From sequence record LR588166.1: a stretch of 64,000 nt of DNA. The stretch is one strand, 5' to 3'. The number at the start of each line of letters is the position of its first letter. Position 1 is the first letter of the stretch. Both the position numbers and the translations under genes were made by a program. The notes under the pieces are model-generated. The model did not search any database and had not been told where the DNA came from. It saw only the letters and a list, made by a program, of their open reading frames with translations. This document shows positions 16,331 to 47,328 of this stretch, in pieces.

Positions 16331-16610
16331 AAGTTATGCGCTGTTGCATACGTAAATACCTCCTATGTTGTTTAGATATGTCGATTCTGGTATAACCAGA
16401 TAGACCTAAGGATGATGCTAGTGATTCCTTAGTATTGTATATTCTAGCTGAGTATAAAGAGTAAGGGGCTTTATACAAATAACAATTCCCTAGGCAAGAT
16501 ATACCGCTCCGTTGTGCTGACGAGCATAATTTGCCCAGATACAGAGCACGTGACTGGTCTGAGGAGCATTTATATCAGAAAGGCAGACTTATGTTTGCCT
16601 TTCTTTTTGA
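16331..16610 (+). ncRNA. candidate structured sRNA (~280 nt) with its own promoter and terminator
   Basis: TTTACA-17-TATACT at 16296-16324; serial hairpins; terminator AGAAAGGCAGA/TTTGCCTTTCT-TTTT at 16577-16608. Confidence 0.5.
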
Positions 16611-16627
16611 GCAGATATTCTCTTATT

Positions 16628-16753
16628 CACTTCCTTATTCATTTCCTTATTCATCTCTATTTCATTTGTCACTTCCTTATTCATTTCCTTATTCATCTCT
16701 ATTTCATTTGTCACTTCCTTATTCATTTCCTTATTCATCTCTATTTCATTTGT
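16628..16753. repeat. 3 x 42-bp pyrimidine-rich tandem repeat
   Basis: Unit CACTTCCTTATTCATTTCCTTATTCATCTCTATTTCATTTGT at 16628, 16670, 16712. Confidence 0.9.
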
Positions 16754-16757
16754 TATT

Positions 16758-16883
16758 GCAAATAAGACTAATTCTTATTTGTGTTTGTAATTTCATTTGT
16801 TATTGCAAATAAGAATTAGTCTTATTTGCATTTGCAACGAAAAAGAATATGCAAATAATAACTATTCTTATTTGCATTTGCAC
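16758..16883. promoter_or_regulatory. cluster of three Fur-box-like palindromes
   Basis: TGCAAATAAGAATTAGTCTTATTTGCA at 16804-16830 plus two variants. Confidence 0.6.
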
Positions 16884-17254: not shown

Positions 17255-17959
17255 ATGTCCGTACATATCACTCGTCAACGTACCGACAAGCAGCACGTCC
17301 TGGCACTGGCAATCAACGGCGTGGTCATCGGCCAGACGATGGCTACTTACACCACCCCGAGCAAGCGCACCTGGTCGGCGACCGCCGAAGTCGAGCTGGC
17401 AGACGGCACTGTCGTTCAGTTCGAGCAGAAAGAAGTGTTCAGCGCGATCCGCATCACCCGCGAAATCGAGCAGGCGCTCGACGGCAAGGAACTGGCGGCC
17501 AAGTACACCCCGGAACCGAAAGTTCCCGGGCAGAAGGGTCCGAAACCGCTCACCGACGAAAGCCGGCTCAGCAACGCGATCGCGATCGTCAAGGCGGCCA
17601 TCACCCACACCGGCTTCGACGAAGCTACCCTGGTGTTCGACGGGGTCGACAAGGCCAACTTCGAGCAGAACAGCACTTCCGTCGGCAACAAGCTGCGTCG
17701 CCTGGGCTTCGTCTTCGAACTCGGCGCCGGCAAGGCGAACAGCGGCAAGGGCTTCCTGATCAACCGCAAAGCGCAGGCCGAGGCAGAAGCCGACGAACGT
17801 AAGGCCAAGCGCGAAGCCGAGAAGAAGGAACGCGAAGAAAAAGCGGCGGCTGCCAAGCGCGAAGCCGACGAACGTAAGGCCAAGCGCGAAGCCGAGCGCG
17901 CCGAAAAGGTCGCTGAAAAGAACGCAGCGATCACCGGGGCAGCACAGGAAAGCAAGTAA
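17255..17959 (+). CDS. VFSAIRI-family protein 1 with a second domain and Ala/Lys/Glu coiled-coil tail
   Basis: 234 aa, GAGG RBS, GC-rich host-like codons; homologous to 36150 and 42554. Confidence 0.85.
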   Translation: MSVHITRQRTDKQHVLALAINGVVIGQTMATYTTPSKRTWSATAEVELADGTVVQFEQKEVFSAIRITREIEQALDGKELAAKYTPEPKVPGQKGPKPLTDESRLSNAIAIVKAAITHTGFDEATLVFDGVDKANFEQNSTSVGNKLRRLGFVFELGAGKANSGKGFLINRKAQAEAEADERKAKREAEKKEREEKAAAAKREADERKAKREAERAEKVAEKNAAITGAAQESK

Positions 17960-21801: not shown

Positions 21802-22389
21802 ATGTCATTTTCTTTGACTGCTGCTATTAATCGATACACTAGTCTAATAGAAGAAAATTTCAAAATAAATTATCTGAAGCATTTTGAGTCAGGATATATC
21901 TCATATAAATTACTAAGAAATAAAACATTCCTACATACTGAAATATCACATAGACTTGATTATATAAAGGTATTTACTTCTTATACATATGTAGAAAATA
22001 ATGTCAAATTAGATAAAAAATCACCTGTTGTACATTCGTATATTTCTACTACTGAATGCTCTAAATTTAGAGTAGGAGATATAAGAAGAATGTTTTACGA
22101 TTCAATACCTCGTGGAAATGTTTTTAATATTAAAGAGAATACTCAAGTTAGCTGGGCAACAGCTAATATTGGAATTCACGAGAATTCGTTTAATCTTAAT
22201 TATATTTCGAACAATAAGTATATTCGATTAGAAACAGGAGATATATTTGTTTGTATTAATGATAGTATGGTAAATGAACTACAAGAACATATGCATGTTC
22301 ATTCTATATGTACTAACAAAACAAAGAAGTTTTATGTAAGAGAAATTGATTTAAACATGCTACATTACAAAAAACACATTATGGAATAA
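21802..22389 (+). CDS. hypothetical protein
   Basis: 195 aa, AGGA RBS. Confidence 0.8.
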   Translation: MSFSLTAAINRYTSLIEENFKINYLKHFESGYISYKLLRNKTFLHTEISHRLDYIKVFTSYTYVENNVKLDKKSPVVHSYISTTECSKFRVGDIRRMFYDSIPRGNVFNIKENTQVSWATANIGIHENSFNLNYISNNKYIRLETGDIFVCINDSMVNELQEHMHVHSICTNKTKKFYVREIDLNMLHYKKHIME

Positions 22390-22392
22390 AGA

Positions 22393-22941
22393 ATGAACTA
22401 CAAAGCATTAGAAGTATTTTATTTCTTTCTAAAACATTACAAGGTAAATCCGGTAGCCGATTTGGAATTTAAATTCGAACCCTCAGGTAGTGATGACCAA
22501 TCTAAGCGCAAGTCATCACTGTCGTTTGTTAAACGTATTAGTGTTCTTACTCCTTCATTTAACGAATTATACGAAGTTCAAAATCGATTCATGACAGATC
22601 TTCGAGAAATGAATGTAGTATATAAGATAGGATTTAATTATAATGCATTCAACGTATTAGCACCGTTGTATGCAAGATATGAAAAGAATGTAAAAGAATT
22701 TCGTCGACTTTTAAAGAAATACTCAAGTTTCAACGAAGTAACAGAATATTACAAAAAAGCTGACAACATGTTACCTGACAATGTATACGAAACAATGAAG
22801 GAAGATTTTTTATTGTTTAATGACGTTACTACAAAAAGGTTATCTGAAATAAAACTTTGTTATCCTAATTGGCAAGTATGGGATTCTGAACATCCCAACT
22901 GGGAAACAATAAATCAACTTTATAAGAATGCAAAGAAATAA
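22393..22941 (+). CDS. hypothetical protein
   Basis: 182 aa, followed by terminator. Confidence 0.8.
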   Translation: MNYKALEVFYFFLKHYKVNPVADLEFKFEPSGSDDQSKRKSSLSFVKRISVLTPSFNELYEVQNRFMTDLREMNVVYKIGFNYNAFNVLAPLYARYEKNVKEFRRLLKKYSSFNEVTEYYKKADNMLPDNVYETMKEDFLLFNDVTTKRLSEIKLCYPNWQVWDSEHPNWETINQLYKNAKK

Positions 22942-24789: not shown

Positions 24790-25322
24790 GCATTGACTGG
24801 ACCAAGGCACCAGAGGGTGCGACGCACTACCAACCGGAATCACGCGGCTTCCATGCGGCATGGTTCCGACTTCAAGGGGGGAAGGCTCGCGAAATGTGGG
24901 TCGTGAGACCCAGCCGCGCGCTTGAGCACATCATCGATCCGACTGTCTTCGACGAGAGCATGCAGAACCTGATCGCCCGCCCCGTAGAAGCTGCCACCTG
25001 GAACGGCCAGGGTCTACCGCCGGTTGGCCTGATGGTGGAGTGGAAGGCAGGCCTTGATCACGACTGGCAGCGCGTAACTGTGCTTGCCTACGCCAATGGC
25101 GACGCGTGGTTTCAGCCCGAGGATGGCCCGTCTTTCATCGTCGGCAACCCGGCAAACTTCAGGCGTATCCGCACCCCCGAGCAGTTGGCCGCCGAGGAGC
25201 GGGAAAAGGCGATTAATCAGATGATTTCTGATGCTGGATACGTAGATCCGAAGATTGGCACATTTGTGGCTATGCGCAATCTCTACGACGCCGGCTACCG
25301 GCGCCGGGAGGAAGGGAAATGA
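24786..25322 (+). CDS. Pseudomonas phage hypothetical protein (MSIDWTKAPEGATHY family)
   Basis: Characteristic N-terminus and GLPPVG / RTPEQLAAEERE segments. Confidence 0.85.
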   Translation: MSIDWTKAPEGATHYQPESRGFHAAWFRLQGGKAREMWVVRPSRALEHIIDPTVFDESMQNLIARPVEAATWNGQGLPPVGLMVEWKAGLDHDWQRVTVLAYANGDAWFQPEDGPSFIVGNPANFRRIRTPEQLAAEEREKAINQMISDAGYVDPKIGTFVAMRNLYDAGYRRREEGK

Positions 25323-25585
25323 GCAGACTGACCGCTGAGCAAGCCCGTGACATAGCGCGAGCGAAAGACGATGTCGATACTATCCTCAACGACATCGCCA
25401 AAGCAGCCGCAGAAGGAAAGTACGTGTACACTACCCGCGCCTATGGGTTCGGCACAGGCGGCGGGCGGCGCAGCGACGCGATCCTCAAAGTGTTGCGTAG
25501 CCTCGGCTACGACTGTGCGGTGCATGCTGAGGGACGCCAGTCTGTTGACCTGTGGCTTGAAGTGAAATGGGGAGACAAGCCATGA
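25319..25585 (+). CDS. hypothetical protein
   Basis: ATGA overlap, GC-rich codons. Confidence 0.8.
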   Translation: MSRLTAEQARDIARAKDDVDTILNDIAKAAAEGKYVYTTRAYGFGTGGGRRSDAILKVLRSLGYDCAVHAEGRQSVDLWLEVKWGDKP

Positions 25586-28941: not shown

Positions 28942-29235
28942 ATGCATAATACCCGTATTGTTGTTCGACTCAATGTTATCACTCCTATTTCAACTGCTAA
29001 TGGCGTTGTAGTTGATTCGGTAGTCCGCGGACATCGAGCAGGCATTAAGCAAGGCAAACAAATGTATCATGTTTATTCTATTCAAACAGGCGAGTATCTC
29101 GGTTTGAAATCAGAAGACGACGTAAGCGAAATTAAACCGTCTTCGTATGAAGAATTTCTTACTCCGAGAACACTTACTTCGACCGAAGTAGAACAAATTA
29201 AATCTTCTTTCGAATGGTACGAAGCTAACGTTTGA
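28942..29235 (+). CDS. hypothetical protein
   Basis: ATG at 28942; terminator at 29240-29262. Confidence 0.75.
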   Translation: MHNTRIVVRLNVITPISTANGVVVDSVVRGHRAGIKQGKQMYHVYSIQTGEYLGLKSEDDVSEIKPSSYEEFLTPRTLTSTEVEQIKSSFEWYEANV

Positions 29236-29471
29236 TAATAAAGGGGGAATTATCCCCCTTTTATTTTTCTTTTATAAACATAAATAATTCGCATTTGCAC
29301 CGAAGATGCTTTATAACGCATAAATTTACATAGCTAATACATACATATTGCTAACGTTAAAAAGCGCGTTATATAGCTTATAATTGCATATTGTGCAATG
29401 CATTTGTTGGTGTTATATTAAACATGCGCAACAATCAACTATACAAAAACATTTATTATGGAGATACAACA

Positions 29472-29762
29472 ATGAAAAATACACTGTGTCTCGTTGCATT
29501 TTTGGGTCTTACAGTAATAGCTCACACTTATGCAGCAGATTCTGCAAATAAAGACGTGAGTACCCTCACTATGGAACAGGATCTAGAAACATATCTAAAC
29601 GAAGAGTTTGGATTAACAGGGAAAGTTAATTGCAATAATGCCGTTAACGGAATGTTCGAATGTGTCATGCACGACGGACAAAAGAAATACATGTTTGCAT
29701 GCAATGCAGAAGACAGTGTATGCATAGTAGTATCTGTCCCAATTAAAGGAATTCGGTTATGA
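29472..29762 (+). CDS. secreted/periplasmic Cys-containing protein
   Basis: GGAG RBS; signal peptide MKNTLCLVAFLGLTVIAHTYA; 4 Cys in mature part. Confidence 0.75.
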   Translation: MKNTLCLVAFLGLTVIAHTYAADSANKDVSTLTMEQDLETYLNEEFGLTGKVNCNNAVNGMFECVMHDGQKKYMFACNAEDSVCIVVSVPIKGIRL

Positions 29763-29947
29763 AAAAAGCTCTTTCAAGTGTAATAGGTATTATTGTTCTG
29801 TTACTAGGCGTATTTATGGTAGATAATCCTACAATAGGATTAATGCTAGGAGGGTTAGTAGGTAGTTATATTTTCAGCATAGGCGGAGTAATTCTATGTG
29901 TTATATCGTTTATGATATTTGCACTTGCCTTTGTTGAGATGAAATGA
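29759..29947 (+). CDS. small membrane protein
   Basis: Hydrophobic, ATGA overlap. Confidence 0.65.
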   Translation: MKKALSSVIGIIVLLLGVFMVDNPTIGLMLGGLVGSYIFSIGGVILCVISFMIFALAFVEMK

Positions 29948-30121
29948 ATAAATGCATAAACAGGTACTGTATAAAAATAAAGAAAGATTAGATTTTGTCT
30001 GTAATAGTTATATATTTTTCAATGTAATATTCTTCATTTTCATTGCATGCGTTACAAAATAGATCACAAAAAGTTTTAAAATTCAGTTTACAGCATGCAT
30101 AGTTTTACGTATTATAAACAC

Positions 30122-30620
30122 ACAAAGCAATACAGCATAACGCATTGTAAGCAACACTAAACGGGAGACACCGTCCCGCAAGCAGCCCGCCCGCGATGTT
30201 CGCGGGCTGCGGCAAACAGGTGTACAAGGTCTAGTAACGTGGAAGGCGCAGCATACCTTTCCTTAAATCGGAAATCGGTCAATGACGTACCTGCCCCTGG
30301 ACACTGCTAGACCTTGCTGCTACAAGCGGGACAGCTACAAAGGTACACTGTATGTATCTATGCTTTACCCCGCTTTGTAGCAGGTCTTAAAACGGTCTAC
30401 TGGCATATGCCTTAGTGCTAGTAGGAATCATTAACCTAAAACTATTATATGCTTCCTGGAGGTGAAGAGTATGCCGCCGCAGCATTAAATATACATTATG
30501 ATGATGATAATTATGAATGCCGAAACACCGCTTCGATTCGTTTAAAAGACAGATGTCTGAATCGAATGTTTTTGGGCAAAAAGGTCCCTTAGATGGGATT
30601 TTTTTGCGGCTGCTAACTAG
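30122..30620 (+). ncRNA. candidate structured ncRNA (260-500 nt)
   Basis: TTTACA-17-TATTAT at 30087-30115; GC-rich nested helices; no credible ORF. Confidence 0.65.
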
Positions 30621-30721
30621 CAAACGCGAATTAATCTTATTTGCAATTTAAGAAAAATACCAGTTGACTGTAGCTTGTTAACATAGTACATTTAACTCAT
30701 AAATCCGCAGGAGTAGCAGTT

Positions 30722-30889
30722 ATGTCGCTGAAAAAGAAACTTTTAAATTCTGTGCAGATTAAATATTTCGGCAACATTTATACTTACATTTATGATGCCG
30801 TTCATGACGTTATTTATTTCGATAACCAGCAAATGTCTTATGCCGAATTTGAAGAGGCAGTAGACTGTAAGCTAGGAGAAGTTCTGTGA
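30722..30889 (+). CDS. 55 aa hypothetical protein
   Basis: TTGACT-17-TACATT promoter, AGGAG RBS; hand translation. Confidence 0.7.
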   Translation: MSLKKKLLNSVQIKYFGNIYTYIYDAVHDVIYFDNQQMSYAEFEEAVDCKLGEVL

Positions 30890-31161
30890 ATGAATATGTT
30901 GATACACACAGAGCTAAAAGAATACTAATAATTTCTTCTATATGTTTTTTTGTAACTGGCATTCTGATAGGATACAGCCTAGCGTCGAATTCTGAGTCTG
31001 CTTCGTTATATATGCAGTATAAAGAACTTGTAAAGTCTTGCGAAGCAGAATTGCCAAGAAATGAAAATTGCCAAGTAATCGTATATGCTATACCAACACC
31101 TGAAGTAGAAGAAGAGAAACTAGAAATACAAACAATTCTCAGAGGGGTCGAAATAAAATGA
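30886..31161 (+). CDS. membrane-anchored phage protein (CE..LPR...C motif)
   Basis: N-terminal TM; SCEAELPRNENC. Confidence 0.75.
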   Translation: MNEYVDTHRAKRILIISSICFFVTGILIGYSLASNSESASLYMQYKELVKSCEAELPRNENCQVIVYAIPTPEVEEEKLEIQTILRGVEIK

Positions 31162-35678: not shown

Positions 35679-36149
35679 CATTGCAAATACAAATAATAAT
35701 TATTCTTATTTGCATTTAGTGATGTAAATAATTCTTATTTGTAATTGCGATTAATTCTTATTTGCTACAATAGATAGAATAAGAATAATTCACATTTGCA
35801 ATGCCGCTAAAAGCGCTGTAAGCGCTGTATGCTGTGTAGTAATGCTAAGCAATGCATTAGTACAGCTACGCGCACAAACGCTGTTATACGCGCTTGTAGC
35901 GCGTTTTAGGGCCCATGCGCATGCGTACACCTGTAGCTTTACATAGCAAAATGCAGAAAAGACGTCGTCTATTAACGTGCCTGTCTTAATAGAAATATAC
36001 AATTGTACAATACCAGCGAAATCCTACACACTACAGACATGCAAACAAGCAACGTGCTTGCAAGCATAAAAGTTTTTAAAAAGTAGTAGACATTGTGTAG
36101 CATCCCTAGTAAGCTACACACACATAAACAACACAACGGAGTACAAGCT

Positions 36150-36617
36150 ATGTCTAATGTAAGCATCCCTGCAGTAACGGTAGAGAATATCGGCACCCTG
36201 CGCATTGTGCGCACCGCTAACAAGGAGGTCGGAAGTGTGCTCGACCTAAAAGTTAACGGGGTAGTAGTAGGGCAAGCTTTCCCGCTCTACAGCACAAAAA
36301 CCCAGCGTAGCTGGAACGCGAGCATGCACGCTACCGTTAACGGCGTAGAGGTGCAGTTTGCACAGGAAGGCGTGTTCAGTGCAATCCGCATTGCACGGGC
36401 GTTCGAGGATGCAGTAAAGTATGCCGTTAGCAACGGCGAGCAAGGGCAACCCCTCCCCGCGCCGGCGGCGCAGTCCGATGCCCCGGCAACGGCAGAAGCG
36501 CAAGCAGAAGCCCCGGCGGCGCAGACCGAGGATGCGCCGGAGACCCCGGCAGCCGAAGCTAAGCCCGCCCGCAAAGGCGGCAGCAAAGGCGGCAGCAAGG
36601 GCGGCAGCAAAAAGTAA
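36150..36617 (+). CDS. VFSAIRI-family protein 2 with Ala/Pro/Lys/Gly tail
   Basis: TAGACA-17-TAAGCT promoter, GGAG RBS, ATG 36150; tail KGGSKGGSKGGSKK. Confidence 0.85.
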   Translation: MSNVSIPAVTVENIGTLRIVRTANKEVGSVLDLKVNGVVVGQAFPLYSTKTQRSWNASMHATVNGVEVQFAQEGVFSAIRIARAFEDAVKYAVSNGEQGQPLPAPAAQSDAPATAEAQAEAPAAQTEDAPETPAAEAKPARKGGSKGGSKGGSKK

Positions 36618-37348: not shown

Positions 37349-37416
37349 AGGAAAGGGGGCAACTGCCCCTTTCCTTTTATGTCCTAAGTGTAAATGCAAA
37401 TTATTCTTATTTGCAC
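37349..37416 (+). terminator. terminator + Fur-like box cassette (near copy of 36631)
   Basis: AGGAAAGGGGGCAACTGCCCCTTTCCTTTTATGTCCTAAGTGTAAATGCAAATTATTCTTATTTGCAC. Confidence 0.8.
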
Positions 37417-37566
37417 AGGGCAGTGAGATGCGAATGCAAACAAGAGGCATTCTTGATACGGCTGGGTGATAAGAATTGTTCACAAAAAGAAAAAGCTTGC
37501 GTTATGCTACACAGGTGCTAGTATGTGTATTGCAGTACCTATAAACATTAATAGCAGGATAAGAAA

Positions 37567-37887
37567 ATGGTTGACTTCAAAGGTTTTAACTGGGACGCAC
37601 TAGACCCAGAGGACAACGTTTCCACAGTTTCCATTAAAAATCACTACGAGGAACTCCTACAAAGTTTTGTTGACAACGGCATAGACTATGTGTTAGTCCG
37701 GCTGTCCCAGGAACTGCCGCACTACGAGGATTCAGATTATCCCTGCTACAAATTGGTTGACAAGTATGCAGGATGGATAGTAGGCTGGGACTACTACGGA
37801 TTTGTTGTGGAACGCATGGACACACGCCTTTTCTTTGACAACGGTACTGCAAAGGGTGTAATGGACTTTCTGGAAGCTAACAGCTAG
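37567..37887 (+). CDS. hypothetical protein
   Basis: TTGCGT...TAGTAT promoter; AGGA RBS; terminator at ~37893-37922. Confidence 0.8.
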   Translation: MVDFKGFNWDALDPEDNVSTVSIKNHYEELLQSFVDNGIDYVLVRLSQELPHYEDSDYPCYKLVDKYAGWIVGWDYYGFVVERMDTRLFFDNGTAKGVMDFLEANS

Positions 37888-38329
37888 CACAAAAAAGGAA
37901 GGGGCGCAAGCCCTTTTCTTTTGTCTGCAATTTCTGTGCAAATAAGAACTATTACAGTTGTGGTAAAAGCACAATGCAAATAAGACGCATTCTTGATTAG
38001 GCCTGATAATAAGTTCTTATTAACAGAAAAGAAACCGAATAAGAATAATTCTGAAAAAATAACCCTGCAGCGTAACACAAAGAGCTTGCAATTTGTAAGC
38101 CCTTTTTAATATGCATTTGTTAAGATTAGTTCTTATTTGCAATGATAATATCCCCGCCACGCAAATAAGAACTAATCTTAGAACAAATATTCACTTGATT
38201 TTTCTCCCAATATAGTGTATGTCTATATTAGATAAGATTAAGTCTTGTTTGCTTGTTACATTTTATATGTTGCAATGCTAAGGCAATGACAATATTATAT
38301 GTACAGCAACACAAAACAGGAGATATAAC

Positions 38330-42553: not shown

Positions 42554-42991
42554 ATGACCAAAGCAACCGTTACCGTCGAGCAATCCGCAATCAAACTGGT
42601 CCGCCGCAACCTGGAAGGGCACCGGCAAGCCCTGCTGCTGAACGGCGTCGAAGTAGGCAGCAGCGAAGCGTTCTACAAGACCAAAACCCAGCGCACCTGG
42701 TCGGCGAAGATCGACGCCAACATCAACGGCAAGGACATCGTCCTCGAACAGAAAGGTGTGTTCAGTGCGATCCGGATCGCCCGGGCGATGGAACAAGCAA
42801 TCCTGTTCATCCTGACCGACGGCAAAGAAGGCTCCGAGATGCCGGCTAGCACGCTGAGCAAGGAAGAACAAGCCCACAACCTGGTCAAGGCAGTAGTCCA
42901 GGTCGCCGCCCACGCTGTCCAGTCCGGCGCCGCTGCCCCGGCGAAGAAAGGCAGCTCGAAGAAGCGCAAAGAAGCCCAGCCGGAAGCATAA
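42554..42991 (+). CDS. VFSAIRI-family protein 3 with Ala/Lys tail
   Basis: AGGAG RBS; KTQRTWSA ... EQKGVFSAIRIAR. Confidence 0.85.
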   Translation: MTKATVTVEQSAIKLVRRNLEGHRQALLLNGVEVGSSEAFYKTKTQRTWSAKIDANINGKDIVLEQKGVFSAIRIARAMEQAILFILTDGKEGSEMPASTLSKEEQAHNLVKAVVQVAAHAVQSGAAAPAKKGSSKKRKEAQPEA

Positions 42992-43030: not shown

Positions 43031-43147
43031 TATGACTGTTAATAGCAAATATTCTTATTTACATCTAATCTGAAATAATAATAACTCTTATTTACAAATC
43101 ATACTGAATAGTGTATTTTACACACTAAACATTGTAGGTAATACAAA

Positions 43148-45973: not shown

Positions 45974-46465
45974 ATGAGCACTACCATCCCCGATTCGATT
46001 CATCCGAGTGACCTTCCCGAAATCAGCCAGGGGCTGGCTGATGGAACCTTCTTTGTCCGCCATTGGCTCAATGGCAAGGAATACGCCTACGTCGATCTCG
46101 GCAAAAGCGCCGAGTTCACTGGAGAATGGGGCGAGTATGGGCTGGACGTGGACAGCGCCGTTAGCTATCGAGACGGAGCTTCGAACACGATCGCTATGGC
46201 TGAAGCTGGCAGCCCGATTGCCAAGCAAGCTATGGAGATCGGAGAAGGCGTATTCATTCCTTCTGTTCTGGAACTGGCTCTTCTGTTCTCAGCAAATCAA
46301 GCAGGCGAGCTGTCTGGTTTCGCAGATCGCTGGTACTGGTCGAGTTCGCAGTACTCCGCCTGCGGCGCCTTCCGCATGCATTTCGGTGATGGCGAGGCTA
46401 GTGTCGCCATCAAGAGCAGCGCCTGGTTGGTCCGCCCCGTCCGCAAGATTCTCATTCTTCAGTAA
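45974..46465 (+). CDS. DUF1566 / Lcl C-terminal (C-type lectin fold) protein
   Basis: IPSVLEL ... WYWSSSQYSA..AF.MHF.DG......K.....VRPVR. Confidence 0.8.
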   Translation: MSTTIPDSIHPSDLPEISQGLADGTFFVRHWLNGKEYAYVDLGKSAEFTGEWGEYGLDVDSAVSYRDGASNTIAMAEAGSPIAKQAMEIGEGVFIPSVLELALLFSANQAGELSGFADRWYWSSSQYSACGAFRMHFGDGEASVAIKSSAWLVRPVRKILILQ

Positions 46466-46542
46466 TCTAGCCCCGGAGATAACACGATGAACCTGCACCT
46501 CTCCAAGCATTGTTTGCGCCAGTGCGCTACTAAGGAACAGTC

Positions 46543-46791
46543 ATGAGTATTGCAAGCTACCTCTTGTTGTCCACTATTGTCTTCAACAACAACACCTACG
46601 CTCGTTCGACGACAGTGGACACCATTGTGGTTCGTGACCTCAGCAAGGAAGACTGCGAGGCGCTCAAGCGTGAGCGCGAAGCAGTTGTGAAGAACATCCG
46701 GGCAAGGAACTTCGGTAGCTCTGGTGATACGAGCGGTATCGCCGTGGGCTTTTCCAAACACAGTTGCACAAAGATGGAGGGTACGAAATGA
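46543..46791 (+). CDS. small exported protein with Cys pair
   Basis: AAGGA RBS; hydrophobic N-terminus. Confidence 0.65.
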   Translation: MSIASYLLLSTIVFNNNTYARSTTVDTIVVRDLSKEDCEALKREREAVVKNIRARNFGSSGDTSGIAVGFSKHSCTKMEGTK

Positions 46792-46932
46792 CTCAACTGG
46801 CACCGGCGAGCAAACATTACTCGGAAGGTGCTAGCTGAACGACTGGCGGAACAATAAATAAAAGTTGACGTGTCCGGGCGAAGGGCGCATAATAATTACA
46901 ACGCAACACAGCAAGCCCCGGAGGGCGCAACC

Positions 46933-47133
46933 ATGAGCCAGATCGTAGATGTCAAGCAAATTGCAATTGATGCAAACCGTCGCCCTGCCTACAATGCGGT
47001 CATGGTGCGCTGGTTGATGCAGGAAGCTGAAATGCACCGTAGCTGTGGGCGCACCGCTACCCTGTTCTGCATCGTTCGCAACCGCCCCGACGGCACACAG
47101 CGCCAGCTCGTGCAGCTTGTGGCTAGCGAGTAA
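46933..47133 (+). CDS. hypothetical protein
   Basis: TTGACG-17-CATAAT promoter; GGAGG RBS; ATG 46933. Confidence 0.75.
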   Translation: MSQIVDVKQIAIDANRRPAYNAVMVRWLMQEAEMHRSCGRTATLFCIVRNRPDGTQRQLVQLVASE

Positions 47134-47163
47134 CCTCAATCACCCTATGCCCGGGAGGCCGTC

Positions 47164-47328
47164 ATGAATGCTGCACTGGCCAGACTTCAGAACGAACGTT
47201 GCATGTTACTTCGCCGGATGCTTTGCAGCAAATGGCACGGATTCTGTTTTGCAGGTCACCCCTGGGCAGAACAAACCCGCAATCTGCACAACGAATCCAA
47301 GTGCATCCGAGAACATTACAGTAAGTAA
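47164..47328 (+). CDS. 54 aa hypothetical protein
   Basis: GGAGG RBS; hand translation MNAALARLQNERCM... Confidence 0.6.
   Translation: MNAALARLQNERCMLLRRMLCSKWHGFCFAGHPWAEQTRNLHNESKCIREHYSK

Follow-up and report, generated by a model that had tools for sequence, protein, structure and literature searches.

The GC-rich stretch at 30087-30620 of the window (the whole 64,000 nt of DNA analysed here, from sequence record LR588166.1) raises the question of whether it specifies an RNA of its own and, if so, of which kind. A sequence-only reading had taken it for a stand-alone non-coding RNA (ncRNA) with its own promoter and a pseudoknotted fold, ribozyme-like or protein-binding and of unknown class. 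According to the present analysis, the stretch is the copy of Wroclawvirus ncRNA002 in Pseudomonas phage vB_PaeM_MIJ3, an independent gene for a non-coding RNA of ~485 nt.

Identity of the locus and the published transcript

Window 29950-30720 is 100% identical to MIJ3 (LR588166.1, 215950-216720), and the same stretch was found in nine other Wroclawvirus phages at 94-99.6% identity. Wroclawvirus is the sole genus of the family Arenbergviridae. In one of these phages, PA5oct, the locus shares 94.3% identity with that of MIJ3 over 771 nt. The PA5oct record carries at 21951-22401 (+ strand, EST35_0068) the feature 'putative lncRNA; ncRNA002; annotation based on RNA-Seq data', which by the alignment offsets corresponds to window ~30134-30588. 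The PA5oct gene lies inside a 39,080-bp terminal repeat amid about 100 small early genes without known function. Flanking genes are collinear across the Wroclawvirus copies, so that ncRNA002 keeps the same neighbours. No feature is annotated at the locus in the MIJ3 record, and some other Wroclawvirus records have 3-5 short 'hypothetical protein' calls there, on both strands.

In PA5oct, four transcribed regions 'lacking putative ORFs or known promoters' were described (Lood et al. 2020, PMC7318152). From the same study, ncRNA002 accounts for 4.65%, 5.04% and 1.23% of phage reads at 5, 15 and 25 min, directional RNA-Seq places it on the + strand, no plausible open reading frame (ORF) was found in it, similarity outside PA5oct was reported for MIJ3 alone and the phage is transcribed by the host RNA polymerase (PMC7318152). 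The transcript is already known from a sister phage in the literature and in GenBank (2019-2020), and hence is not new as a discovery. No functional study of ncRNA002 was found in the literature after the 2020 PA5oct paper. The PA5oct and MIJ3 copies are alike in locus, strand, neighbours and abundance pattern and differ in two replaced patches (30191-30215 and 30486-30516) and in about 13 point differences. The published annotation is given without promoter, terminator, structure or function.

Abundance and ends of the transcript

Four public RNA-Seq runs from two phage variants were used; their contigs were placed on window 29600-31099 and word depth was summed per bin. Contig depth is a coarse measure and the contigs are strandless, so the + strand was taken from the published directional data (PMC7318152). 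Summed depth was mostly 1e5 to 1.2e6 within 30150-30599, and in the flanks mostly 0.4-2.7e3 up to 30099 and 1.2-1.7e3 from 30600. The ncRNA thus stands several hundred-fold over its flanks, and in all four runs the baseline is reached again at ~30600, ahead of the next gene. Depth was lower in the last bins and, in run X4, past 30500, where the variable patch of PA5oct fails to align. The contigs of the low-depth flanks stop at 30149-30169 (left) and 30517-30583 (right). One contig of a PA5oct-type run starts at 30121, the start position expected from the promoter described below. Depth at 30122-30161 is far below that of the interior, and the 5' end was placed between 30121 and ~30150. Together the contigs delimit a discrete RNA from ~30122-30150 to ~30590-30605.

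The same RNA was recovered from environmental samples. The wastewater RNA runs X5 and X7 contained 0.88 and 0.86 of the sampled words of 30150-30600, against 0.26 and 0.25 of those of the 1401-nt stretch; ~37/38 of the words present fall inside the ncRNA, and runs X6, X9 and X13 were alike. Data sets of this type assembled the ncRNA without its flanks, as expected if the RNA is far more abundant than its neighbours. ncRNA002 appears abundant or persistent enough to assemble alone from environmental RNA. Depth, wastewater words and the lack of a conserved ORF all describe a discrete, highly abundant transcript without plausible coding sequence. As a separate observation, runs X5, X7, X13 and X26 (wastewater RNA), X6, X9 and others are not obviously on this phage and contain nearly all sampled ncRNA words and almost no flank words.

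Promoter, terminator and the next gene

The following control elements were located around the transcript.

30087-30115, + strand: sigma-70-type promoter TTTACA-17-TATTAT (TTTACA 30087-30092; TATTAT 30110-30115), 10/12 positions matched
30576-30607, + strand: intrinsic terminator, stem GCAAAAAGGUCCC/GGGAUUUUUUUGC (inverted repeat, stem probability 0.997), loop UUAGAU, U-tract 30599-30605 (U7)
30664-92, + strand: promoter-like site TTGACT-17-TACATT of the next gene, which starts at 30722

The promoter, already pointed out in the sequence-only reading, is the best sigma-70-like site in 29700-31000 and is invariant in 10/10 genomes. An A/T-rich stretch (30064-30086) directly precedes it and the predicted start is ~30121-30123. 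At the other end, the baseline depth reached at ~30600 agrees with the terminator position. Both changes that phage phi30-2 has in the terminator stem (30582 A>G, 30584 G>A) leave the pairing intact. A consensus terminator scanner does not list 30576-30607; the predicted pairing of its U-run with a run of A further upstream is the presumed reason. Since the next gene has its own promoter-like site and depth falls before it, the ncRNA is stand-alone, as had been proposed; the depth rise at ~30150-30600 and the PA5oct ncRNA002 annotation bear this out.

Some variation was seen further upstream. Contigs of three of the four RNA-Seq runs have 56 extra letters between 29949 and 29950, and several genomes have a 12-15-nt insertion near 29968-29980 (29967-29976), just upstream of the ncRNA promoter region. 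An extra 65-aa ORF is annotated at this indel region in some records. Directly after the ncRNA terminator, at 30620-30645 and ~19 nt upstream of the -35 of the next gene, lies a copy of a recurrent ~26-bp element, GCAAAYRCNAATTAWTCTTATTTGCA, an imperfect palindrome.

Predicted secondary structure

The locus is a GC-rich island in AT-rich DNA, where GC content rises to 0.62 at 30150-30249, the mean of the window being 0.346. The + strand of 30122-30607 (486 nt) has a predicted folding energy of -167.3 kcal/mol, whereas dinucleotide shuffles give -130.0 +/- 5.8 (z = -6.46); 0/100 shuffles were as good. The minus strand of the same stretch gave z = -4.55. In a 150-nt sliding scan the ncRNA locus reached z = -3.2 to -4.7 and was not at the top, other loci of the window reaching -9 to -10.6, partly because its longest helices span ~90 nt. 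By these energy calculations the predicted fold of ncRNA002 is a series of stable hairpin domains, and it is far more stable than that of shuffled sequence. The predicted domains are as follows, where P is the base-pairing probability of a helix in the full-length ensemble.

30122-30161, + strand: A/C-rich 5' leader, ~40 nt, mostly unpaired in the minimum free energy (MFE) fold and by base-pair probabilities; PA5oct has 30150 A>G
30162-30178, + strand: 5' hairpin CGGGA/UCCCG, P = 0.92, competing with GUCCCGC (30173-79)/GCGGGAC (30326-32)
30182-30210, + strand: GC-rich hairpin GCAGCCCGC/GCGGGCUGC, or 8 bp at 30189-96/30200-07, from inverted repeats and fold; its tip is variable patch 1
30225-30316, + strand: domain closed by a 12-bp helix (30225-36/30305-16), P = 0.95, with short helices up to an apical UUUCC/GGAAA (30258-62/30270-74)
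30317-30383, + strand: long hairpin CUGCUACAAGCGGG/CCCGCUUUGUAGCAG, 14 bp with one bulge (30317-30/30369-83), apical stem 30341-47/30353-59, P = 0.88-0.99
30397-30424, + strand: 10-bp hairpin CUACUGGCAU/GUGCUAGUAG with 8-nt loop, P = 0.97
30449-30488, + strand: invariant segment with GGAGG (30458-62) and a mini-ORF (30471-30488), local pairing weakly predicted, P about 0.15
30486-30516, + strand: AT-rich low-complexity spacer, variable patch 2, replaced in PA5oct
30532-30566, + strand: hairpin UUCGAUUC/GAAUCGAA, 8 bp, with a 4-bp apical stem, P = 0.98

All the sequences and complementary pairs quoted in the sequence-only reading are present where it placed them, and about half of its helices belong to the best model. 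CCGCGA/UCGCGG (P 0.92), CGGGA/UCCCG (0.92), UUCGAUUC/GAAUCGAA and the terminator stem are retained, as is the 10-bp perfect inverted repeat CAAGGUCUAG/CUAGACCUUG (P = 0.95), which is included in the 12-bp helix and present in every fold tried. The other half is disfavoured. GUCCCGC/GCGGGAC, AGCAG/CUGCU and GGAAGG/CCUUUCC have P near 0 in the full-length ensemble. The 3' strand of GCUACAAAG/CUUUGUAGC (30334-42/30373-81) lies inside the competing, mutually exclusive 14-bp helix of high probability, and GCCGCA/TGCGGC uses 30605-30610, at or past the terminator U-tract. The supposed pseudoknot CAGGU/ACCUG also has P near 0, its 5-bp duplex is worth only -5.1 kcal/mol and ACCUG sits in a GCAG/CUGC helix with P >= 0.97. 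With all helices of that reading enforced over 30155-30400, the energy was -80.2 against -96.1 kcal/mol, a cost of ~16 kcal/mol; forcing the closing helix GUCCCGC/GCGGGAC by itself cost 9.5 kcal/mol.

A switch between CGGGA and the closing helix as partners of GUCCCG had also been suggested. Folding energies give this idea some ground, but only for an intermediate formed during transcription. When the RNA was folded at growing lengths, the closing helix was in the MFE structure for 3' ends at 30335, 30345 and 30360 and was lost at 30375 and beyond, once 30369-83 is made. The 5' domain thus probably has two mutually exclusive predicted folds, one of them transient. The present data gave no sign of a regulatory use of this rearrangement.

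Sequence variation among the ten copies

The ten copies have a mean identity of 98%. PA5oct differs from the other nine in two low-complexity patches, the GC-rich hairpin tip at 30191-30215 and the AT-rich spacer at 30486-30516. In the former, about 13 positions differ and 3 nt are deleted in PA5oct, and a local GC hairpin is still formed; in the latter PA5oct has a 1-nt deletion, and both versions form a local AU hairpin. In the high-probability helices, 4/4 single changes keep the pairing (30325 A>G, 30563 C>U, 30582 A>G, 30584 G>A). The 30325 A/G polymorphism turns an A-U into a G-U pair, and 30563 C>U in PA5oct a G-C into a G-U pair. The three substitutions in the domain of the 12-bp helix (30263, 30276 and 30299) are all at unpaired positions. 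Loop changes were found at 30411 (C/T, hairpin 30397-30424) and at 30552 and 30553 (hairpin 30532-30566). The substitution pattern is compatible with the predicted structure and agrees with it without proving it.

Coding potential

On either strand, every ORF of >=20 aa is changed in at least one of the 10 genomes, as PA5oct alters all of them. The locus had been called ORF-free, which is loosely true: ORFs of up to 47 aa (+) and 78 aa (-) exist, and none is conserved. The deletion in patch 2 of PA5oct shifts the frame of both of these. Direct reading of a 44-aa ORF annotated in several records showed that the PA5oct changes in it are all amino-acid-changing, and in a 32-aa ORF (30282-30380) two changes were read, one synonymous (30299) and one Lys>Arg (30325). 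A mini-ORF, AUG CCG CCG CAG CAU UAA (MPPQH*, 30471-30488), begins 8 nt downstream of GGAGG (30458-62). This segment is invariant in 10/10 genomes, save for a TAA>TGA change in PA5oct by which a stop codon is kept. Judged on the aligned copies, a coding reading of ncRNA002 seems weak, though less so for the tiny MPPQH frame and the 32-aa frame.

Two complementarities between the 5' GC-rich domain and the segment with the Shine-Dalgarno-like site and mini-ORF were seen, one between 30206-30213 and 30476-30483 (GCUGCGGC/GCCGCAGC, 8/8) and a second between 30248-30261 and 30464-30477 (14 nt at 79%). The direct repeat CGCAGCAU occurs at 30247 and 30478. The complementarity could be a tertiary or alternative pairing which hides the AUG.

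Search for families and relatives

The Rfam search that had been suggested as a check was run and agrees with an unknown class. At gathering score, no match relevant to the ncRNA was found in the whole 64-kb window, and at E <= 10 over 29900-30800 only noise was obtained (snoRNA-like, MH_s7 and a minus-strand Fluoride fragment at E = 3.1). Self-cleaving ribozymes (hammerhead, twister, pistol, hatchet, HDV-like, glmS and others; Rfam 15) gave no match at gathering score in the window and none at E <= 10 in 29900-30800. No riboswitch or cis-leader signature was found: there is no Rfam aptamer, termination is near-complete in the 4 runs and the downstream gene has its own promoter-like site. ARAGORN found no tRNA or tmRNA in the 64-kb window, which gives ncRNA002 no tRNA-like or tmRNA identity.

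Matches outside the genus were likewise not found. A 'distant' blastn search over 50,697 phage records matched 11 Wroclawvirus records only (10 phages, 771 nt, 94.3-100% identity). The 5' domain alone, at E <= 10, retrieved only chance GC-rich matches in mycobacteriophage tail genes, and a plasmid search only one chance match of 33 nt. Exact 20-24-mers had 0 matches in viral contigs and genome contigs, and in metagenome contigs one chance match inside a coding gene (L012); a protein-level scan of the viral contigs was negative too. A spurious 41-aa ORF used as protein query found only phage Ettore, and the synteny route led, through the sole neighbouring protein with PHROG matches, to unrelated Pakpunaviruses. 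No paralogy was seen with ncRNA001, 003 and 004 of the same phage, none of which is in Rfam. On these sequence comparisons ncRNA002 is seen as an orphan restricted to Wroclawvirus.

Known large or abundant RNAs provide points of comparison. GOLLD and ROOL are, like ncRNA002, hundreds of nucleotides long, highly structured, abundant in lytic growth and of no known function. No covariance-model match to GOLLD, ROOL, other large Rfam ncRNAs or the phi29 packaging RNA (pRNA) was found. ncRNA002 differs from GOLLD and ROOL also in being shorter (~485 nt), in having no tRNA gene in the 64-kb window and in coming from one genus, without a covariation-supported architecture. CrcZ (~400 nt), RsmY/RsmZ and 6S, protein-sequestering RNAs of Pseudomonas that act by titration, resemble ncRNA002 in being stand-alone genes with promoter and intrinsic terminator and in their high copy number. 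ncRNA002 matches none of these in Rfam; copies of their binding motifs (A-rich AANAANAA, GGA in loops) are not enriched in it and it has no repeated loop motif. The phi29 pRNA, too, is a phage ncRNA made early and in large amounts from a gene close to a genome end; the ncRNA002 gene of PA5oct lies in the 39-kb terminal repeat. The two differ in phage type and packaging system, and ncRNA002 shows no sign of association with virion or motor.

Possible function and alternative explanations

ncRNA002 is a real stand-alone structured ncRNA, best explained, with moderate confidence, as one which would act in trans as a protein-binding decoy or scaffold. Host sigma-70 RNA polymerase would start at ~30122. 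The 5' GC-rich domain of the nascent RNA may close first through GUCCCGC/GCGGGAC and, after synthesis of the 3' strand, rearrange to the 5' hairpin and the 14-bp helix 30317-30/30369-83. In the early and middle phases of infection the completed RNA would work in trans and in bulk, its target as decoy or scaffold being a factor of the host or of the phage. A role as catalyst or cis-regulator seems less likely than that of a protein-binding decoy or scaffold. Trans, stoichiometric action is suggested by a level of ~5% of phage reads, by the length and by a multi-domain fold with few long single strands, and also by near-complete termination before a gene with its own promoter, by the absence of ribozyme or riboswitch signatures and by the lack of an antisense target in the window. 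Protein binding, one of the two earlier proposals, is plausible.

Several results weigh against this explanation. The covariation check, run on the 10 copies with RNAalifold, gave 158 pairs and 0 compensatory changes among copies 94-100% identical. The 19 variable sites outside the two patches fall at 9 unpaired and 10 paired positions, with no significant bias to unpaired positions (p = 0.18). With neither compensatory change nor a placement bias, the case for the structure is a purely thermodynamic one. Since the orphan is confined to Wroclawvirus, the test for structure-preserving substitutions is uninformative, and conservation itself says little among relatives of one genus at 94-100% identity. 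The exact 5' and 3' ends are only approximate, as contig depth is coarse and strandless. The invariant, strong Shine-Dalgarno-like site with its 5-codon ORF points to possible translation. No sponge-type repeats were detected (GGA 8 vs 5.9 expected, one A-R-N run of >=3, no k-mer family-wise significant), and GGUC/AGGU showed a nominal excess only. Both trans action and protein binding, finally, are steps that we infer.

Among the alternatives, regulation by base pairing is the main rival, and micro-peptide, attenuation, catalysis and a functionless by-product are less likely. A base-pairing RNA would use its unpaired 5' leader or junctions to pair with host or phage mRNAs or small RNAs (sRNAs), possibly with Hfq, altering their translation or decay. 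The 40-nt unstructured A/C-rich leader, the intrinsic terminator with its U7 tail and the early abundant expression would suit it, but the U-tail is predicted to pair with the upstream A5 run, and 485 nt that are mostly paired are atypical of seed-type sRNAs. The rest of the 64-kb window has no significant complementarity, the best being 17 nt at 94% (E about 0.3) inside a variable patch, and no target for an Hfq-type RNA was seen in the window. This reading is given a minor but real chance. That ncRNA002 is a stable by-product without dedicated function, a strong promoter together with a nuclease-resistant GC-rich relic, would fit its restriction to one genus, the lack of covariation and a PA5oct divergence outside the patches (13/421 sites) similar to that of the upstream spacer. 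Promoter, terminator and 5' domain are nevertheless kept in 10/10 isolates from Europe and Asia, and spending ~5% of transcripts on a neutral product would be unlikely for a phage, which leaves this reading quite unlikely.

Translation of the MPPQH mini-ORF or of the 32-aa ORF 30282-30380, making ncRNA002 an mRNA or a dual-function RNA, appears very unlikely. GGAGG and the AUG that follows it are 8 nt apart, the segment is invariant beside a hypervariable 3' neighbour with its stop kept through TAA>TGA, and the 32-aa ORF has only a synonymous change (30299) and a Lys>Arg (30325). Five codons are very short, however, and the AUG of the 32-aa ORF is buried in the predicted helix 30252-54/30282-84 and has no good Shine-Dalgarno site before it. 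PA5oct disrupts or alters every longer ORF, and the authors of the PA5oct study found none plausible. A cis-acting leader or attenuator, in which read-through of a terminated 485-nt leader controls the downstream early genes, is highly improbable. It would agree with the common orientation of ncRNA and downstream genes, and the alternative pairings with a mini-ORF of two proline codons resemble leader-peptide attenuators. Against it stand the several hundred-fold depth drop at the terminator in 4/4 runs and the promoter-like site and 26-bp element GCAAAYRCNAATTAWTCTTATTTGCA upstream of the next gene, and no anti-terminator pairing or riboswitch family match was found. The least probable of all is the leading idea of the sequence-only reading, a self-cleaving or catalytic RNA with a pseudoknotted core. 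The GC-rich, multi-helix 5' domain with its several alternative pairings would be in keeping with it, but no Rfam ribozyme family matches even at E <= 10 and the pseudoknot strand ACCUG, whose 5-bp duplex is so weak, conflicts with a helix of P >= 0.97. Summed depth is also broadly continuous in runs X1 and X2 and no internal pile-up of molecule ends is listed, in contig data too coarse to exclude self-cleavage.

Other elements in the window

The ~26-bp element GCAAAYRCNAATTAWTCTTATTTGCA next to ncRNA002 recurs in the window at about 28 sites besides 30620-30645. Its core, TCTTATTTGCA, has 29 occurrences at <=1 mismatch against 3.15 expected, and 0/100 shuffles had as many. Example sites are 16757-16876, 23008, 27409, 35704-35766, 36686, 37405-38170, 38687, 39112, 39947, 43053-43096 and 44010. 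The copies are mostly on the + strand and, where checked, intergenic. The element resembles a site bound by a phage regulator or a component of a class of phage promoters. At 38121-38180 and 37932-38030, a perfect 20-bp inverted repeat with 20-nt spacer and two weaker ones are all formed from the GCAAAYRCNAATTAWTCTTATTTGCA/TCTTATTTGCA element; the fold z is -9.7, and the region corresponds to ~ PA5oct 29138-30121, where ~1 kb has no annotation.

Window 16351-16586 is orthologous to ncRNA001 of PA5oct (98.7% identity over 1201 nt). A promoter-like TTTACA-17-TATACT directly precedes it, and a terminator hairpin lies at ~16581-16609. Its fold is modestly better than shuffles (z = -2.4), with no similarity to ncRNA002 and no Rfam match. 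Next to it, 16616-16882 holds tandem direct repeats of alternating 12/30-nt spacing (42-nt period), followed by 46-47-nt repeats. The region contains long inverted repeats built from TCTTATTTGCA and gave the most extreme fold z of the window, -10.6; it lies at and just downstream of a gene annotated 'extensin-like protein' in PA5oct.

Other GC-rich islands (0.59-0.75 GC) in the 34.6% GC window are 36444-36593, 17468-17920, 24973-25539, 42834-42983 and 46298-47183. The richest, 36444-36593 (75% GC), is coding, being the Ala/Pro/Glu-rich C-terminal tail with GGSK repeats of a 174-aa ORF without Pfam match; GC islands are therefore not unique to the ncRNA002 locus.

Significance for Wroclawvirus biology

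The present analysis adds to the published annotation a computed promoter, terminator, approximate ends and a domain map with confidence for each helix, as well as two mutually exclusive folds of the 5' domain and two hypervariable peripheral patches. Further additions are the invariant Shine-Dalgarno-like site with its mini-ORF and the wastewater RNA data sets in which the RNA is found alone. About 1/20 of the phage transcripts in early and middle infection are ncRNA002. The RNA is confined to one genus, whose jumbo phages are candidates for therapy; among them, Paride can kill dormant P. aeruginosa, replicating in it (PMC10761892). The present evidence has no pointer to a new mechanism, and it is unlikely that ncRNA002 represents a new class of large structured phage RNA, which would undergo a programmed co-transcriptional rearrangement of its GC-rich 5' domain and would bind and neutralise a specific host protein, for example one of defence, RNA decay or dormancy. 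If that were true, such neutralisation of a host factor could contribute to the unusual biology of Wroclawvirus, as in the replication of Paride in dormant P. aeruginosa.

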